Below, one piece after another: positions 9,928 to 42,859 of a stretch of DNA of 64,000 nucleotides. Position numbers and translations under genes: made by a program. Under the pieces are notes generated by a model. The model was not told the origin of the DNA, did not search any database, and was given only the letters and a program-made list of their open reading frames with translations. The stretch covers positions 124,001 to 188,000 of the IMG/VR virus record IMGVR_UViG_3300033997_000478. The stretch is one strand, 5' to 3'. Every line of letters starts with the position of its first letter. The first letter of the stretch is position 1.

Positions 9928-9952
9928 TTTCACCGCTATACTACACTCGTGA
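9928..9952 (+). promoter_or_regulatory. Putative phage early promoter
   Basis: A-tract plus TTTCA-ccgcta-TACTAC-actcg-TGA. Confidence 0.72.
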
Positions 9953-36459: not shown

Positions 36460-37140
36460 ATGAACAAGCAGCAAGCCAAGGCTGACGTGCAGAGCATGCA
36501 CGATGAGCTCGGGGACTGGATCTACGGGTGTTCGCCGATCAAAGCGCGCAATCGCGCTGACGATTACAACAGCGATGCCGATGAGATCGAGAAAGCTCAA
36601 CCCAACAGCCCCATTGCCCAAGCACGGGCGATGCGCCTGAGGTCCAAGGCGACCTTGCTGAATCACCTCAGTGCCTGTCTGGAAGTGCTGGGCTGCGAAC
36701 TGGGGGCGCCTCCGATGGAGGAGCTTCCCAAGGGCGTGATCCGCTTCCCCGGCAAGCAGAACGAAACGATCATCTTCCACGAACCGGCTGACGGGGATGT
36801 GGAGGTAGACCAAGAATCCATGGTGTCTTTCACCGATGCTGAAATGAAGGCCGGTCCGCAGCCGCGCTTCAAGATCGGGGATGATGCTTGGATCGTGGAC
36901 CAGAACCCGGATGATCCTGAGGACATCGGCTTTCTGGAGGTAGTGATCGTCGGGGTCGATCACGGTGTGGAGGATGTACATTACCTCATCGGCCATCGCG
37001 GTGATGACGGAATCATCCGCACCAACTACGAATGCGTCTGCGCACACGAGATCCTGGGGGATCCGGATGAGTATGATGACACCCGTCCCAAGCGTCTGAG
37101 CAAGGAACAGGTGCGCGCTCACTTGCGCGTGGTCAAGTGA
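36460..37140 (+). CDS. Hypothetical protein ending in an SspB-type ClpX-binding tail (RAHLRVVK)
   Basis: C-terminal LRVVK-COOH; acidic SH3-like segment PRFKIGDDAWIV. Confidence 0.75.
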   Translation: MNKQQAKADVQSMHDELGDWIYGCSPIKARNRADDYNSDADEIEKAQPNSPIAQARAMRLRSKATLLNHLSACLEVLGCELGAPPMEELPKGVIRFPGKQNETIIFHEPADGDVEVDQESMVSFTDAEMKAGPQPRFKIGDDAWIVDQNPDDPEDIGFLEVVIVGVDHGVEDVHYLIGHRGDDGIIRTNYECVCAHEILGDPDEYDDTRPKRLSKEQVRAHLRVVK

Positions 37141-38073: not shown

Positions 38074-38184
38074 GGCACGTGGACTCCAGGGGAAAGGGTT
38101 GCGGTTAGTAGATCTTGCCTACACAGGATTACGTAAATTTTCACGCATGGATAACATCCTGTGGTAGAAGCCCGCTTAAGTCCT

Positions 38185-38398
38185 GACTTGCCGTCTTTTA
38201 CCCCTCGTCCCCCTAAGTGGCCTTTTAAGGCCGATCGCCCCTTCCTTGGCGAACCCTCTTACTTGGTGCGGGACGAGTCCTATTCAAATGACTTCTTAAA
38301 TCGTGGAAGATTGCAGCTCTTTTCAGAGCGCGATCATCGGTGCGTCTGGCAAATCCGGCACCGGCTGGCCCACTACCGTTCCAGGGGACGGGGAAGTC
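38185..38398 (+). ncRNA. Candidate structured ncRNA A (about 215 nt), unknown class
   Basis: Ends pair (GACTT.CCGTCTTTT with AGGGGACGG..AAGTC); internal helices such as CTCGTCCC/GGGACGAG; heads the tRNA cluster. Confidence 0.55.
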
Positions 38399-38409
38399 GC
38401 CTTTTCTGC

Positions 38410-38434
38410 GGACATGTAGCTCAGTTGGTTAGAG
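38410..38434 (+). pseudogene. 5' fragment of a tRNA gene (acceptor 5' strand plus D-arm)
   Basis: GGACATG-TA-GCTCAGTTGGTTAGAG; no matching 3' half seen nearby. Confidence 0.65.
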
Positions 38435-38439
38435 AGAAC

Positions 38440-38856
38440 ATGGGTAATAACTACAACCAGTACATGGCAGGCTACATGAATCGGCGCTATAAGAGACGTC
38501 GAGAGTGGGCTGTGGAATTACTGGGCGGGGTGTGTCGGCACTGCGGGAAGCCCGATGACGGGACTCATGAGTTTGACCACATTAACCCTACCGATAAGTT
38601 GGTGCCCATTGCAAGTCTTTGGTCGGCCAACCTCGAGCTCTTCCTGAACGAACTAGAGTGCTGTCAGCTTTTATGTAAAGCGTGCCACATCGTAAAGACT
38701 AGGAAAGATCTAGGTCAAAATGATGCGCGAATTGTCCACGGCACGCTTTCTAGCTATCGGTACTGTCGCTGCGATGCATGTAGACAAGCCAAAAGTGAAT
38801 GGTCGCGTCAGGCCTACATAAAGCGAAAAGAACAACAGCGACAACACTCACTTTGA
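38440..38856 (+). CDS. HNH (homing) endonuclease
   Basis: CRHCG...EFDHINP...CQLLCKACH, then HGT..Y..CRCDAC. Confidence 0.88.
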   Translation: MGNNYNQYMAGYMNRRYKRRREWAVELLGGVCRHCGKPDDGTHEFDHINPTDKLVPIASLWSANLELFLNELECCQLLCKACHIVKTRKDLGQNDARIVHGTLSSYRYCRCDACRQAKSEWSRQAYIKRKEQQRQHSL

Positions 38857-38866
38857 AAGTTTCACT

Positions 38867-38943
38867 AGGGATGTCGTCAAGTGGTCTAAGACACGGTCTT
38901 TTGATGTCCGCACGCGTAGGTTCGAATCCTGCCATCCCTGCCA
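38867..38943 (+). tRNA. tRNA-Gln (TTG)
   Basis: AGGGATG/CATCCCT acceptor, loop TT-TTG-AT, GGTTCGAATCC, encoded CCA; one anticodon-stem mismatch. Confidence 0.88.
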
Positions 38944-38952
38944 CAGTTTCAA

Positions 38953-39028
38953 GGGTCAGTAGCTCAATAAGGATAGAGCAGCGATCTCTGGTCGTTGGTT
39001 GAAGGTTCGAGTCCTTCTTGACCCGCCA
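38953..39028 (+). tRNA. tRNA-Arg-like gene with a 5-nt anticodon loop (atypical)
   Basis: Intact acceptor, D and T arms and CCA; GCGAT-CTCTG-GTCGT; body resembles tRNA-Arg(UCU). Confidence 0.7.
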
Positions 39029-39038
39029 CAGTTACAAA

Positions 39039-39110
39039 GCCCCCATGATGTACTGGAGCATTCCCGTCTCTAAAAGGACGGGTCGTGAGGTTCGAATCCT
39101 CAAAGGGGCA
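39039..39110 (+). tRNA. Atypical tRNA-like gene with CTA (amber) triplet in an enlarged anticodon loop
   Basis: CCCGT-CTCTAAAAGG-ACGGG; T arm TGAGG-TTCGAAT-CCTCA; 5-bp acceptor with two mismatches; no encoded CCA. Confidence 0.6.
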
Positions 39111-39123
39111 CTCACCTTTCAAT

Positions 39124-39199
39124 ACAGCGTTCGTCTAGCGGTCTAGGATCGCGGCCTTTCACGTCGCTAACACGGGTTCGAATCCCGTACGCTGTACCA
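39124..39199 (+). tRNA. tRNA-Glu (TTC)
   Basis: ACAGCGT/ACGCTGT acceptor, loop CT-TTC-AC, CCA. Confidence 0.93.
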
Positions 39200-39214
39200 C
39201 CTTTCGGAGCCTTC

Positions 39215-39409
39215 ATGAAGTATCCAACGATCTACAAGCTGGAGAATCTGGCAGCCCTTGCGGAGGGCAACGTCAGTAGCTCAGTCGACGGTAAGACCTG
39301 GGTTCCCACCCGTCCCATCGGCTACCCCAGTTGGCGTACGCGCCTGAAGGCTGCATGGCTGGTGCTCACCGGTCGTGCTGATGCGGTTGTCTGGCCGCAG
39401 GGTCAGTAA
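39215..39409 (+). CDS. Small phage hypothetical protein
   Basis: GGAG SD; WVPTRP...RLKAAWLVLTGRADAVVWP. Confidence 0.72.
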   Translation: MKYPTIYKLENLAALAEGNVSSSVDGKTWVPTRPIGYPSWRTRLKAAWLVLTGRADAVVWPQGQ

Positions 39410-39415
39410 GTTTTC

Positions 39416-39492
39416 TGTGGATTAGCTCAGTTGGCTAGAGCGTTCCCCTGATAAGGGAAAGGTCGGTGGTTCGAGTCCACTATCCGCAACCA
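39416..39492 (+). tRNA. tRNA-Ile (GAT)
   Basis: TGTGGAT/ATCCGCA acceptor, TTCCC-CTGATAA-GGGAA, CCA. Confidence 0.93.
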
Positions 39493-39497
39493 GTTCT

Positions 39498-39813
39498 GGG
39501 TCTTGGTGTGATCGGCTGAAGCGTCTGATCCGGAGCGCTGGGGGATTCCCCCGCCACGGATCTTATTCCCCGTGACTTACGGTGTAACGGGGTGTATCTG
39601 TGTCCTGCCTTTCCCCGATTGCGAGTCGGGCTCACAGGCGGGCGAACCGTGCGGTCCCTATCGCGGGGGCAAGTTGTAAGACGTTGTATCAACCGGGAGA
39701 CTTGGCTCTTAACGGAGGGCCGAAGGGTCGTTCGCGGCTAGACCTCGGTTGTTGACGTGTGCAGCCTTTAGTTATCCTCTTTGTCGGTGTGCACCTGACT
39801 GGTCGATAACTAA
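39498..39813 (+). ncRNA. Candidate structured ncRNA B (about 320 nt), unknown class
   Basis: Continuous series of GC/GU helices; no + strand ORF; lies between tRNA-Ile and a terminator. Confidence 0.6.
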
Positions 39814-39842
39814 TGGAAGTACATGAGTTGGAAAGGGGTGTA

Positions 39843-39873
39843 GGAGAGGAGGCTGCAGCCTCCTCTCTTATGC
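39843..39873 (+). terminator. Terminator of the RNA cluster
   Basis: gagaggaggc-TGCA-gcctcctctc followed by TTATGC. Confidence 0.72.
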
Positions 39874-39889
39874 TGTCGATCCAAGTTGG

Positions 39890-39914
39890 ATTGAGGGCTA
39901 TACTATCCCCATGA
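39890..39914 (+). promoter_or_regulatory. Putative phage early promoter (variant)
   Basis: ATTGA-gggcta-TACTAT-cccca-TGA, same spacing as the others. Confidence 0.55.
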
Positions 39915-39973
39915 CAGGGTGCATCAAAAAAGACACCCGAGTATCTTCCTATAGACCAAGAGGAAACCCGCCG

Positions 39974-40630
39974 ATGTTCCAGACTCCCAAGGGCATGTCC
40001 AGCTTCCTGCCCCATTATCTCTACGCTCTGGTTTACTGGATCGAGGAGAACAACTTCGACCCGTACCTGATCGTCAACCGCCAAGCGGAAGGTGTGGAGA
40101 TCCCCACGTCCGTTCCAGGCAATGACGACGGCACGATCGCACTGAACCTGGCCAGTCGTACGCGCGATGCGCAGCACTTCTACTTCACCGAGAACCACTT
40201 CGAGTACAAGACCGCCTTCAACGGCAAGCGTACAGTGGTGAAGGTGCCCTACACTGCGATCTACGCCGTGACAGCCCGTGGCTGTACCGAGTGGGAGGGT
40301 GAGAACGTCATCCACTTGTTGAACCTGCGTGATGGAAAGGTACAACAGATGTACGTAGTGATGGGCCCGCACGAAGAAGCCCCCACCTCATCCGAACTGC
40401 ATCGCATCGGCGAAGCGCTGATGGGCAGTCTCAAGTCGCCAGTGGCGGGCGAACAGCTGGCGGAAGAATTCACCAAGCGTCTGGCTGCAGCACCGCAGGA
40501 AACGCATCCGGACGTCGTCCAACCCACCCAATCCCATGAGTCCCACCCGGACGTCGTGGAAAACACCACCTCCACGGCCGAGCCGGCATCCAACGTCGTC
40601 TACGCCGCCTTCGGAAAAAGGAAGCCCTGA
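39974..40630 (+). CDS. sspB: Stringent starvation protein B homologue (ClpXP adaptor)
   Basis: PHYLYALVYWIEENNFDPYLIVN...GVEIP...DGTIALNLA...AFNG...VKVPYTAIYAVTAR aligns by eye with the E. coli SspB core. Confidence 0.85.
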   Translation: MFQTPKGMSSFLPHYLYALVYWIEENNFDPYLIVNRQAEGVEIPTSVPGNDDGTIALNLASRTRDAQHFYFTENHFEYKTAFNGKRTVVKVPYTAIYAVTARGCTEWEGENVIHLLNLRDGKVQQMYVVMGPHEEAPTSSELHRIGEALMGSLKSPVAGEQLAEEFTKRLAAAPQETHPDVVQPTQSHESHPDVVENTTSTAEPASNVVYAAFGKRKP

Positions 40631-41085
40631 TGGAAAGTGTTTTGCGTAAGCAGATGAAAGAGCTCTGCGCCGCCGCCGACCAAGTCACCCATCTGTTCGG
40701 GTGGGCAACGGTTGAAGATGTGGCCGAGTTACGCATGCAGTTGAACCGCATGCAGAACGCCATCGCCGGCATGACCAACGGGCAGGTTCTGGCAGCGATG
40801 CTTCGCGACCCGACTCCGGAAGAACAGGCAGTGAGGTATCTGACCATTGACATGCGTCCGGACGTGAAGCTGTATGATCCGTCAATGATCGTGGTCGAGG
40901 TGAACGACACCCTGCACAACCCGGAAGATGAAGGTTACGAGCCCATCACCAACTTCACCCGTGCCGGCCAAGCGCAGAAAGGTCCTCGGTTCAACCTTGA
41001 CGACGCCAGTACGATCGACGCCCGCTTCACGGCTGCGGCTGCGCCGGACCTGAGCAAGTGCTTCACGATGGTGATCAAGTCGTAA
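40630..41085 (+). CDS. Hypothetical protein
   Basis: TGATG coupling to sspB. Confidence 0.72.
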   Translation: MESVLRKQMKELCAAADQVTHLFGWATVEDVAELRMQLNRMQNAIAGMTNGQVLAAMLRDPTPEEQAVRYLTIDMRPDVKLYDPSMIVVEVNDTLHNPEDEGYEPITNFTRAGQAQKGPRFNLDDASTIDARFTAAAAPDLSKCFTMVIKS

Positions 41086-41611: not shown

Positions 41612-42082
41612 GTGATGAACGACTTTGAAGAAGCACTGAATCGGGTTGCAGAAATGGGCCCTGAACTCGAAGGTAGGCTCAAAGCGACCATCGATGAAAA
41701 GACCAAAGAGGGTCCGGTCACGGTCTTGGTTGTCGGCAACCACAACGCTCGACTGCTCACTGCGGTGCTGGCACGCATTGGGGCCGAGCGGCAGGTGACG
41801 GTGGAAGTAGAGCCGGAGCCCATGCAGATCGATCGGACCTTGATTGCCGAAAAGATCGGCGACCACCTGAGCAAGCTGGTCCGTGAACTTCGGTACATCG
41901 AAGACCAGACCAGTATCCACGAACTTGAAGTGGTTGAAGCCCAAGAAATCGAACGGGCCAAGCCGCTCAAGACCAAGGTCAAGGGCTTCCAATCCAACCG
42001 CCAGTTCAAACAGCAGAAGCCGGCGTTCAAGAACCAACATCAAATGCGCGCGATGATTCGCCCGCCACGACGGGGTGGCTAA
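41612..42082 (+). CDS. Hypothetical protein
   Basis: ORF track. Confidence 0.7.
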   Translation: MMNDFEEALNRVAEMGPELEGRLKATIDEKTKEGPVTVLVVGNHNARLLTAVLARIGAERQVTVEVEPEPMQIDRTLIAEKIGDHLSKLVRELRYIEDQTSIHELEVVEAQEIERAKPLKTKVKGFQSNRQFKQQKPAFKNQHQMRAMIRPPRRGG

Positions 42083-42100
42083 CCAATGAAAGGAAGTGCC

Positions 42101-42859
42101 ATGGGTCTCAAAGAAGGAACCTACTGGAAGGGTCGACTGAGGGTCTACCGTAACGAATCCAGTTGGGGTGTGACGCTTCACTCTGCCGGTGAAGACTACC
42201 GTCACGACAAGAAGAACCGGCTGGTCGTGGAGGGGTTTGGCTGGTCGTTCTGGCTGAATCTTCCTGATTGGGTCAAGCCGGTCAAGGTCACCAAGAGCTA
42301 CAACGGTAAGAGCTACGTGGTCACCGAAAAGCGGGTTTACGGGATCAGCCTGTTCGATGGCGAGCACCTGACCGTCTCCTACGGCCACAATGACATCAAC
42401 GTCGAGAACCCACAACGCTGGTCGTGTTTCTTACCGTGGACGCAGTTCGCCCACGTCCGCCACAGCGGGTACGATCTCAACCACAAGCACGTATTGGACT
42501 TCGATAAATCTGACTACGATCAGTTGTATGTTCAACGTGCTCTGGTCCCCAGTGCCGAGATCGGCTTCCTCGATTACGACGGCCAGGCCCTGACCGCCAC
42601 CGTACGCATCGAGGAGCGCGAATGGCGCAGGGGTGACAAGTGGGGTTGGCGCTGGTTGCGCTGGTTCAGCAAGCCGATTATCTCCCGCCGGCTGGAAGTG
42701 GAGTACAGCGGTGAGACCGGCCCACGCAAGGGCGAGTGGAAGGGCGGTACGATCGCTGAGTCGATCAACATGCTTCCCAATGAACCATACATGGAAGCCT
42801 TCGCACGTCTGCGCCAGCAGCGTCTGGAGGCGATCAACAAGCAGCGAAGGAGAGACTGA
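42101..42859 (+). CDS. Trp-rich phage hypothetical protein
   Basis: AAGGA SD; GETGPRKGEWKGGT. Confidence 0.72.
   Translation: MGLKEGTYWKGRLRVYRNESSWGVTLHSAGEDYRHDKKNRLVVEGFGWSFWLNLPDWVKPVKVTKSYNGKSYVVTEKRVYGISLFDGEHLTVSYGHNDINVENPQRWSCFLPWTQFAHVRHSGYDLNHKHVLDFDKSDYDQLYVQRALVPSAEIGFLDYDGQALTATVRIEEREWRRGDKWGWRWLRWFSKPIISRRLEVEYSGETGPRKGEWKGGTIAESINMLPNEPYMEAFARLRQQRLEAINKQRRRD

Follow-up and report, generated by a model that had tools for sequence, protein, structure and literature searches.

A jumbo phage SspB homologue that combines a gamma-type substrate-binding domain with an alphaproteobacterial-type C-terminal tail

A jumbo phage genome encodes an SspB homologue (P0001) with a gamma-type substrate-binding domain, and sequence comparison indicates that this host-class cargo domain is joined to the docking-peptide type of another bacterial class. 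This combination suggests that the phage re-wires rather than merely copies host protein disposal. The source record is a virus genome of 324,428 bp with direct terminal repeats, and is therefore assigned to a jumbo phage; the window, i.e. the whole stretch of DNA that was analysed, comprises 64,000 nucleotides (bases 124001-188000 of the record). All translations use genetic code table 11. For comparison, L003 and L004 denote the loci of close relatives, L002 the locus of phage LucasX, and L005 a distant phage locus. The following features of the window are considered here:

36460-37140, + strand: P0003, a protein of 226 aa whose sequence ends in ..RAHLRVVK, the host-type ClpX-binding (XB) motif
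39828-39884, + strand: long conserved hairpin just 5' of the sspB operon, with 5 compensatory pairs (both sides changed) in L005 and LucasX
39898-39905, + strand: CTATACTA box, unchanged in L003 and L004 and forming the core of a promoter-like motif that recurs in the genome
39960-39965, + strand: ribosome-binding site GAGGAA, 8 nt 5' of ATG 39974, reading AAGGAA in L004 and AAGG-AA in L003
39974-40630, + strand: sspB-like gene (P0001, 218 aa plus stop), from the ORF list and matches to Pfam, PHROG, NCBIfam and solved structures
40004-40279, + strand: SspB substrate-binding domain, residues 11-102 (N-terminal helix and beta core), delimited by AF2, Foldseek and conserved positions
40280-40489, + strand: lineage-specific extension, residues 103-172, with a hairpin (110-130) and two helices (139-154 and 159-171) in a low-confidence model
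40496-40567, + strand: two tandem 33-nt units encoding ..THPDVVQPT.. and ..SHPDVVENT.. (within residues 173-199), from DNA comparison
40589-40627, + strand: C-terminal tail SNVVYAAFGKRKP, of the alphaproteobacterial SspB type by sequence and tail comparison, its NVV being the third copy of the DVV unit
40630-41085, + strand: gene for a 151-aa protein, its ATG overlapping the sspB stop codon (ATGA) and its tail ..PDLSKC(F/S)TMVIKS invariant in a 62% identical homologue
42086-42859, + strand: homologue of the CBASS inhibitor Acb3 (Pfam PF25187, E 8e-48), also present after sspB in L004

ATG 39974 was taken as the start of sspB because the upstream ATG 39911 is a TTG in both close relatives (L003 and L004) and a 1-nt deletion between 39911 and 39974 breaks the frame in L003; the longer ORF starting at 39911 was rejected accordingly. 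The close homologues of P0001 (P0004-P0007) reside on contigs of up to 324.7 kb (P0007 on 60.9 kb and P0004 on 1.5 kb), and a search of viral-contig and genome-contig collections with P0001 or an alignment yielded no related loci.

The affiliation of the N-terminal part of P0001 with SspB is supported by profile, sequence and structure comparisons, in line with the clear SspB core that an earlier note on this DNA had described from the sequence. Pfam PF04386 (SspB) matches residues 13-102 with 37.7 bits (cut-off 27, E 2.6e-9), PHROG 8945 ("SspB-like") matches at 1e-7, NCBIfam SspB models match with E-values down to 3e-14, and the sequences of the solved H. influenzae and E. coli SspB structures match with E 6e-8 to 3e-6. 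The AF2 model, based on a 119-sequence alignment, has a pLDDT >90 over residues 11-102, and its best 12 Foldseek matches in the PDB are all gamma-type SspBs (E 2e-7 to 1e-6, TM by target 0.68-0.80), with 1oul, 1zsz, 1ox9 and 8et3 at the top. In contrast, the match to the Caulobacter SspB-alpha structure 2qas is far weaker (E 1.6e-4, TM 0.54), in keeping with a core that is not of the alpha type. The invariant family positions W22, P44 and P92 are retained, as are A18, N26, P30, L57, N58 and F82, each conserved in at least 90% of the family. Several other positions conserved at 70%-90% differ in P0001, and R81, the arginine of the ARF strand (85% conserved in the family), is replaced by alanine or serine in the P0001 lineage only, so cargo specificity may differ. 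Compared to gamma-type SspBs, P0001 has an additional 70-aa extension and repeated DVV units, and it scores far below the NCBIfam equivalog cut-offs (NF008762-NF008770; best 53.1 bits vs. a cut-off of 191).

Within the gamma-type SspBs, the core is closest to those of the Xanthomonadaceae, sampled here as 30 genomes of the family to which a Stenotrophomonas MAG belongs. Residues 1-120 of P0001, LucasX P0002 and P0116 match 30/30 of these SspBs with medians of 41, 56 and 56 bits, respectively, and match other XB-tailed SspBs less well, while none, or almost none, of 17 SspBs with an alpha-type tail were matched. By phmmer, P0001 itself gave no match to these 17 proteins, and its substrate-binding domain is not of the alpha type. 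Together, the Xanthomonadaceae-like core and the alpha-type tail described below therefore characterize P0001 as a core/tail chimera.

The C-terminus of P0001 translates to SNVVYAAFGKRKP and not to LRVVK, just as first read, and the canonical gamma/beta XB motif ..L[RKST][VIL][VI]K is absent from its very end. This motif terminates most of 140 representative SspB relatives. Among 80 loci, mostly Xanthomonadales/Lysobacterales, nearly all have an XB-type end, most commonly HLRVVK, and all 30 Xanthomonadaceae SspBs (30/30) end in [HFQ]LR[VIL][VI]K. The docking peptide of E. coli SspB is RGGRPALRVVK (PMC3983244). P0001 thus differs from the gamma SspBs of E. coli and H. influenzae (1ox9, 1ou8, 8et3) and from those of the Xanthomonadaceae in lacking a terminal ..L[RK]V[VI]K, which is present in most of the bacterial gamma-type SspBs compared.

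The alphaproteobacterial tail was taken directly from genomes, using a 101-genome sample of the phylum, of which 61 were tested for alpha_tmRNA. An alpha-type tmRNA scored above the cut-off in 15/61 tested genomes, which were among the higher PF04386 scorers. Low-scoring PF04386 members, also considered as candidates for alpha-type SspBs, were rejected, as they end in LR[VL][VI]K and come from genomes without alpha_tmRNA; the alphaproteobacteria are the high scorers. In the 101-genome sample, 17 SspBs end in ..[ED]VVSLDxFRKK, and alpha_tmRNA was found in 9/9 of their genomes that were tested. One of the nine SspB tails from alpha_tmRNA genomes reads SNVVTVDFGRKK and is the nearest example to the P0001 tail, with which it has NVV, a 3-residue spacing, F, G and a basic end in common. 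The alpha-like tail proposed in the earlier note is therefore supported, and the form given there for alphaproteobacterial tails (VVxLxxFRKK) is right, since the 17 tails read from genomes resemble that of P0001. Like SspB-alpha (Caulobacter, 2qas), the P0001 tail consists of VV, three to four residues, F and basic residues (..EVVSLDAFRKK and ..SNVVTVDFGRKK vs. ..SNVVYAAFGKRKP). Its agreement with the alpha-type pattern (VV, 3 residues, F, G/R, basic residues) is inexact, with YAA in place of TVD or SLDA, and it is the most divergent tail of its clade (VVYAAF vs. the alphaproteobacterial VVSLDxF, and G where most have R). In nine alphaproteobacterial genomes (G096, G061, G053, G065, G049, G045, G081, G069 and G100), sspB and the alpha-type tmRNA gene are separated by no more than a few hundred bases.

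Among other phage SspBs, this tail type is seen in RTH11 (SNVRTVDFRAPRKPKS), P0116 (TVRVVDFSKNRPKK), P0093 (NVAVVDFRSKTRLPK) and LucasX (..MADFRARRKPSS). Besides the Xanthomonas phages RTH11 and LucasX, the metagenomic relatives with such a tail number two, of which one is encoded on a syntenic contig of 205.6 kb. The SspBs of the Xanthomonas jumbo phages RTH11 (WJJ55006.1, listed as a ClpXP protease specificity-enhancing factor) and LucasX (LUCX_196, a hypothetical protein by annotation) share with P0001 the same syntenic position, the gamma-type core and the alpha-type tail. Unlike P0001, to which they are 22%-38% identical, they lack most of the extension 103-172 and have tails with VDF or ADF and a longer basic end. 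Further counterparts are RAY gp039, pf16 gp18, Xoo-sp14_69, Ralstonia FLC4-3B gp94 and the members of PHROG 8945, which, like P0001, are phage-encoded SspB domains and putative ClpXP adaptors. In contrast to P0001, the SspBs of Xoo-sp14 (TLMVVK), RAY (gp39, TLTVVK), pf16 (TLRVVK) and Ralstonia FLC4-3B (FLSVVK) end in the canonical XB motif.

Between core and tail, P0001 contains material of restricted distribution. AF2 places a hairpin and two helices at a pLDDT of 46-64 in residues 103-172, and approximately 30-40 of these residues are absent from the LucasX homologue. The insert of about 40 aa reported in the earlier note thus corresponds to real additional sequence, with approximately 30-40 residues lacking a LucasX counterpart, but it is located after the core and not within it. 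Beyond approximately residue 130, a search of 1.84 billion representative proteins returned almost no match apart from the P0001 cluster itself and LucasX, and all ESM Atlas look-alikes for residues 104-218 scored <0.8. Residues 172-218 have no predicted secondary structure (pLDDT 54-59), and AF2 thus predicts a disordered linker following the folded domain. The duplication within this linker, first noticed in the protein, is also visible at the DNA level, where the two 33-nt units are 73% identical to each other and 39 nt apart. At the DNA level, NVVY of the tail is a third copy of the ACGTCGTC unit, positioned 42 nt beyond the second, and the DVV units before the tail are spaced 13-14 residues apart. 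Some proteobacterial SspBs (at loci L150, L151, L154, L162 and L165 of bacterial genomes) contain an internal XB-like motif approximately 25-30 residues before the terminal one, e.g. ..QLQVV.. followed by ..TLRLVK, which offers a precedent for the repeated docking units of P0001.

Conservation is unevenly distributed along the protein. Compared to P0007, the most distant of the close homologues (67% overall identity), the core of P0001 is 77% identical, the extension 47%-52%, the repeat region 74%, and the last 13 residues 92% (12/13). Constraint on P0001 is therefore strongest in the tail, at 92% identity as opposed to 77% in the core and approximately 50% in the extension.

The host-type docking motif missing from P0001 is found at the end of P0003, confirming the remark in the earlier note that a gamma-type tail is located on a different protein (36460). 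The HLRVVK end of P0003 is the commonest ending of Xanthomonadaceae SspBs, and P0003 is the sole ORF with such an end among the 2,418 stop-to-stop ORFs of the genome. The tail type is kept in its family: homologues in the Xanthomonas phages LucasX, Xoo-sp14 and RTH11 (27%-35% identical) end in QLSIVR, ALFIVK and KLSVVR, respectively, each motif being preceded by a basic residue and a proline. P0003 has no Pfam or PHROG match, all its ESM Atlas look-alikes scored <0.8, and AF2 (3-sequence alignment) resolves only an N-terminal three-helix bundle, with the rest poorly modelled. P0003 is a probable functional partner or counterpart of P0001.

Both genes are part of a conserved arrangement. The gene order of the window recurs in L003, L004, LucasX, RTH11 and L005: a P0003 family gene is followed by a small gene on the reverse strand, a long stretch of non-coding DNA, sspB and a downstream block. 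The conserved downstream block includes genes for an NTP pyrophosphohydrolase, a DUF4406 protein and a dCTP deaminase. Conserved around sspB are thus the structured hairpin on its upstream side and, downstream, genes for nucleotide metabolism and counter-defence. For the 151-aa protein encoded at 40630-41085, neither a family match nor a homologue in LucasX or L005 was found. Further downstream, a 156-aa protein (41612-42082, + strand) and its homologues in LucasX (L002:6099-6518) and L005 (L005:9036-9530) end in ..RPPRRGG(R), the proline/arginine/glycine run also seen ahead of HLRVVK in the SspBs of many Xanthomonadaceae.

Upstream of sspB, the number of tRNA genes is variable, with five in the window, six in L003, one in L004 and none at the LucasX or L005 loci. 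As this neighbourhood is not conserved and the phage lacks a tmRNA, the "translation-stress module" that the earlier note had read from the adjacent tRNA cluster is not upheld. An HNH endonuclease gene (38161-38856) directly precedes the tRNA cluster in the window (region 38161-39492). One of the ARAGORN predictions (39039-39111, + strand) has a four-base anticodon (taaa) and scores 24.2 bits with Rfam, under the tRNA cut-off of 29; its L003 counterpart is called as tRNA-Phe with anticodon AAA. The non-coding stretch from the tRNA-Ile to the hairpin (39493-39830, + strand) is 87%-95% identical in L003 and L004 and contains no conserved ORF. Since the L003 sspB protein is only 67% identical, the adjoining non-coding DNA is no less well preserved than the gene. 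The Rfam search of the non-coding region 39493-39973 yielded nothing at the gathering or E-value threshold, and the stretch 39493-39830 may represent a novel RNA without an Rfam family.

The hairpin at 39828-39884 occurs once in the genome and has no Rfam match. Its counterparts at L005:7200-7290 and L002:4270-4369 (LucasX) belong to distant phages without nearby tRNAs, and its flanks are strongly conserved (GGAAAGGGGTGTAGGAG ... CTCTTATGCTGTCGAT). Between the hairpin and sspB, the CTATACTA box corresponds to the core of a promoter-like motif, ~aATGAAAAAnnTTTCAyCgCTATAATAcnCnCGTGAa, also written ~aATGAAAAAnnTTTCAyCgCTATA(A/C)TAcnCnCGTGAa, of which approximately 11 copies exist, all on the + strand (genome positions 31253, 31890, 86726, 104537, 105882, 133936, 156037, 161197, 212769 and 237776, of which 133936, 156037 and 161197 are window positions 9936, 32037 and 37197), often just 3' of a terminator. 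The spacing of the motif is not that of sigma-70 promoters, so it may serve a phage RNA polymerase. The earlier note had placed an early-type promoter in front of sspB; the box agrees with a putative promoter at this place, but the copy at sspB lacks the upstream half of the motif and a sigma-70 scan upstream of the gene found nothing. The 13-mer around the box occurs once in the genome.

The only known cultured relatives of P0001 and P0003 are from phages infecting Xanthomonas, and these relatives together with the P0003 tail point to a host among the Xanthomonadaceae. In three genomes of this family, the tmRNA tag is ANDDNYALAA or ANDDNYGSDFAIAA. Both contain ANDDNY, the N-terminal determinant bound by the native domain of SspB. 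This domain binds the first seven tag residues, and the C-terminal segment of SspB binds the ClpX N domain (PMC9963277). A protease partner supplied by the phage itself was considered and rejected, as the genome contains no ClpP, ClpX zinc finger, AAA_2, HslV or Lon_C. A tmRNA was not found in the phage genome either, and no phage ORF has an ssrA-like ANDxNY motif or a ..LAA end. Without a ClpX, ClpP, Lon, HslV or tmRNA of phage origin, host ClpXP is the likely target, and any action must go through the host machinery.

In Caulobacter, the SspB-alpha tail is the tether to ClpX. We give an even chance to the reading that the chimeric phage SspB acts as a ClpXP adaptor that tethers tagged cargo to host ClpX through its alpha-type tail. 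During infection, P0001 would dimerize like SspB, and the dimers would capture cargo carrying the host tmRNA tag (ANDDNY...) or another peptide fitting the same groove. Using their alpha-type tail, the dimers would tether this cargo to the ClpX N-domain of the host. In this way, SspB-dependent delivery would be taken over by the phage and not simply supplemented, and P0003 with its host-type tail may compete against host SspB for ClpX. A more elaborate version, in which P0003 (..HLRVVK) displaces host SspB and further clients from the ClpX N-domain, the three DVV/NVV copies let the phage SspB dock without being blocked by P0003, and only phage-chosen cargo reaches ClpXP, is speculative and would seem a rather remote prospect.

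Alternatively, P0001 could be a substrate trap or dominant-negative SspB, which would bind tagged proteins or form heterodimers with host SspB via the N-terminal helix without delivering them. This would protect cargo that is tagged or otherwise SspB-dependent from ClpXP, and the host-type tail of P0003 would block the ClpX N-domain. Such a function would be consistent with a P0001 tail that differs from the host motif, with the presence of the host-type motif on a separate, conserved phage protein, and with the masking of the tag from ClpAP that SspB also brings about when it binds (PMC9963277). When two copies of the ClpX N-domain (residues 1-64) from a Stenotrophomonas MAG were predicted in complex with residues 180-218 of P0001, the score was 0.27, under the mark of 0.34, which did not support docking and is no evidence against it either. 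Still, a tail without a docking role should drift, yet this tail is the most conserved segment of the protein and matches the type retained by the SspBs of alpha_tmRNA genomes. Moreover, Xoo-sp14 has a canonical XB tail on its SspB as well as a P0003 homologue, which fits delivery better than blockade. We consider the trap rather unlikely.

The tail might also dock elsewhere, i.e. on another host unfoldase, on a phage protein such as the 151-aa product, or in the ClpX pore as a basic degron that makes the adaptor short-lived. The basic C-terminal ends in the clade (GKRKP, RARRKPSS, APRKPKS and SKNRPKK) are compatible with this, the extension 103-172 could serve as an additional interaction surface, and the 151-aa gene that overlaps the sspB stop codon is kept in the close relatives. 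However, LucasX and L005, which have the tail type, lack a homologue of that gene, and a tail so close to those of alphaproteobacterial SspBs, down to the VV...F spacing, speaks for a partner shared with these bacteria, making a different one improbable. Finally, that P0001 is a captured host gene of little consequence whose tail has no specific role, as its closeness to Xanthomonadaceae SspBs in the core might suggest, is very improbable given that the same position is held across phages with copies only 22%-38% identical, that the tail and repeat units are clearly constrained, and that the tail type differs systematically from that of the host.

Phage SspB homologues as such are already known, having been reported or annotated for pf16, RAY, RTH11 and Xoo-sp14 (the latter two in GenBank). 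Gp18 of Pseudomonas phage pf16 was described as an SspB homologue (PMC5587285), and the SspB-like protein gp039 of Erwinia phage RAY is cytoplasmic (PMC10299810); neither PMC10299810 nor PMC5587285 reports biochemical tests of these proteins. What appears to be new is the core/tail chimerism common to a clade of Xanthomonas-type jumbo phages, as well as the pairing of a chimeric SspB with a conserved carrier of the host-type tail, both undescribed in the literature searched.

Adaptors determine which proteins are destroyed by AAA+ proteases, and phages are known to tamper with host proteolysis. To our knowledge, work on phage SspB homologues has so far been limited to annotation and localization and has not explained them. 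P0001 and P0003 represent a natural experiment that could reveal how each tail type engages ClpX and whether the two are in competition. Because the cultured phages LucasX and RTH11 have the same arrangement, peptides and purified Xanthomonas ClpXP would allow both questions to be addressed directly. If the two tails are orthogonal, they would also be useful for engineered protein-degradation systems.
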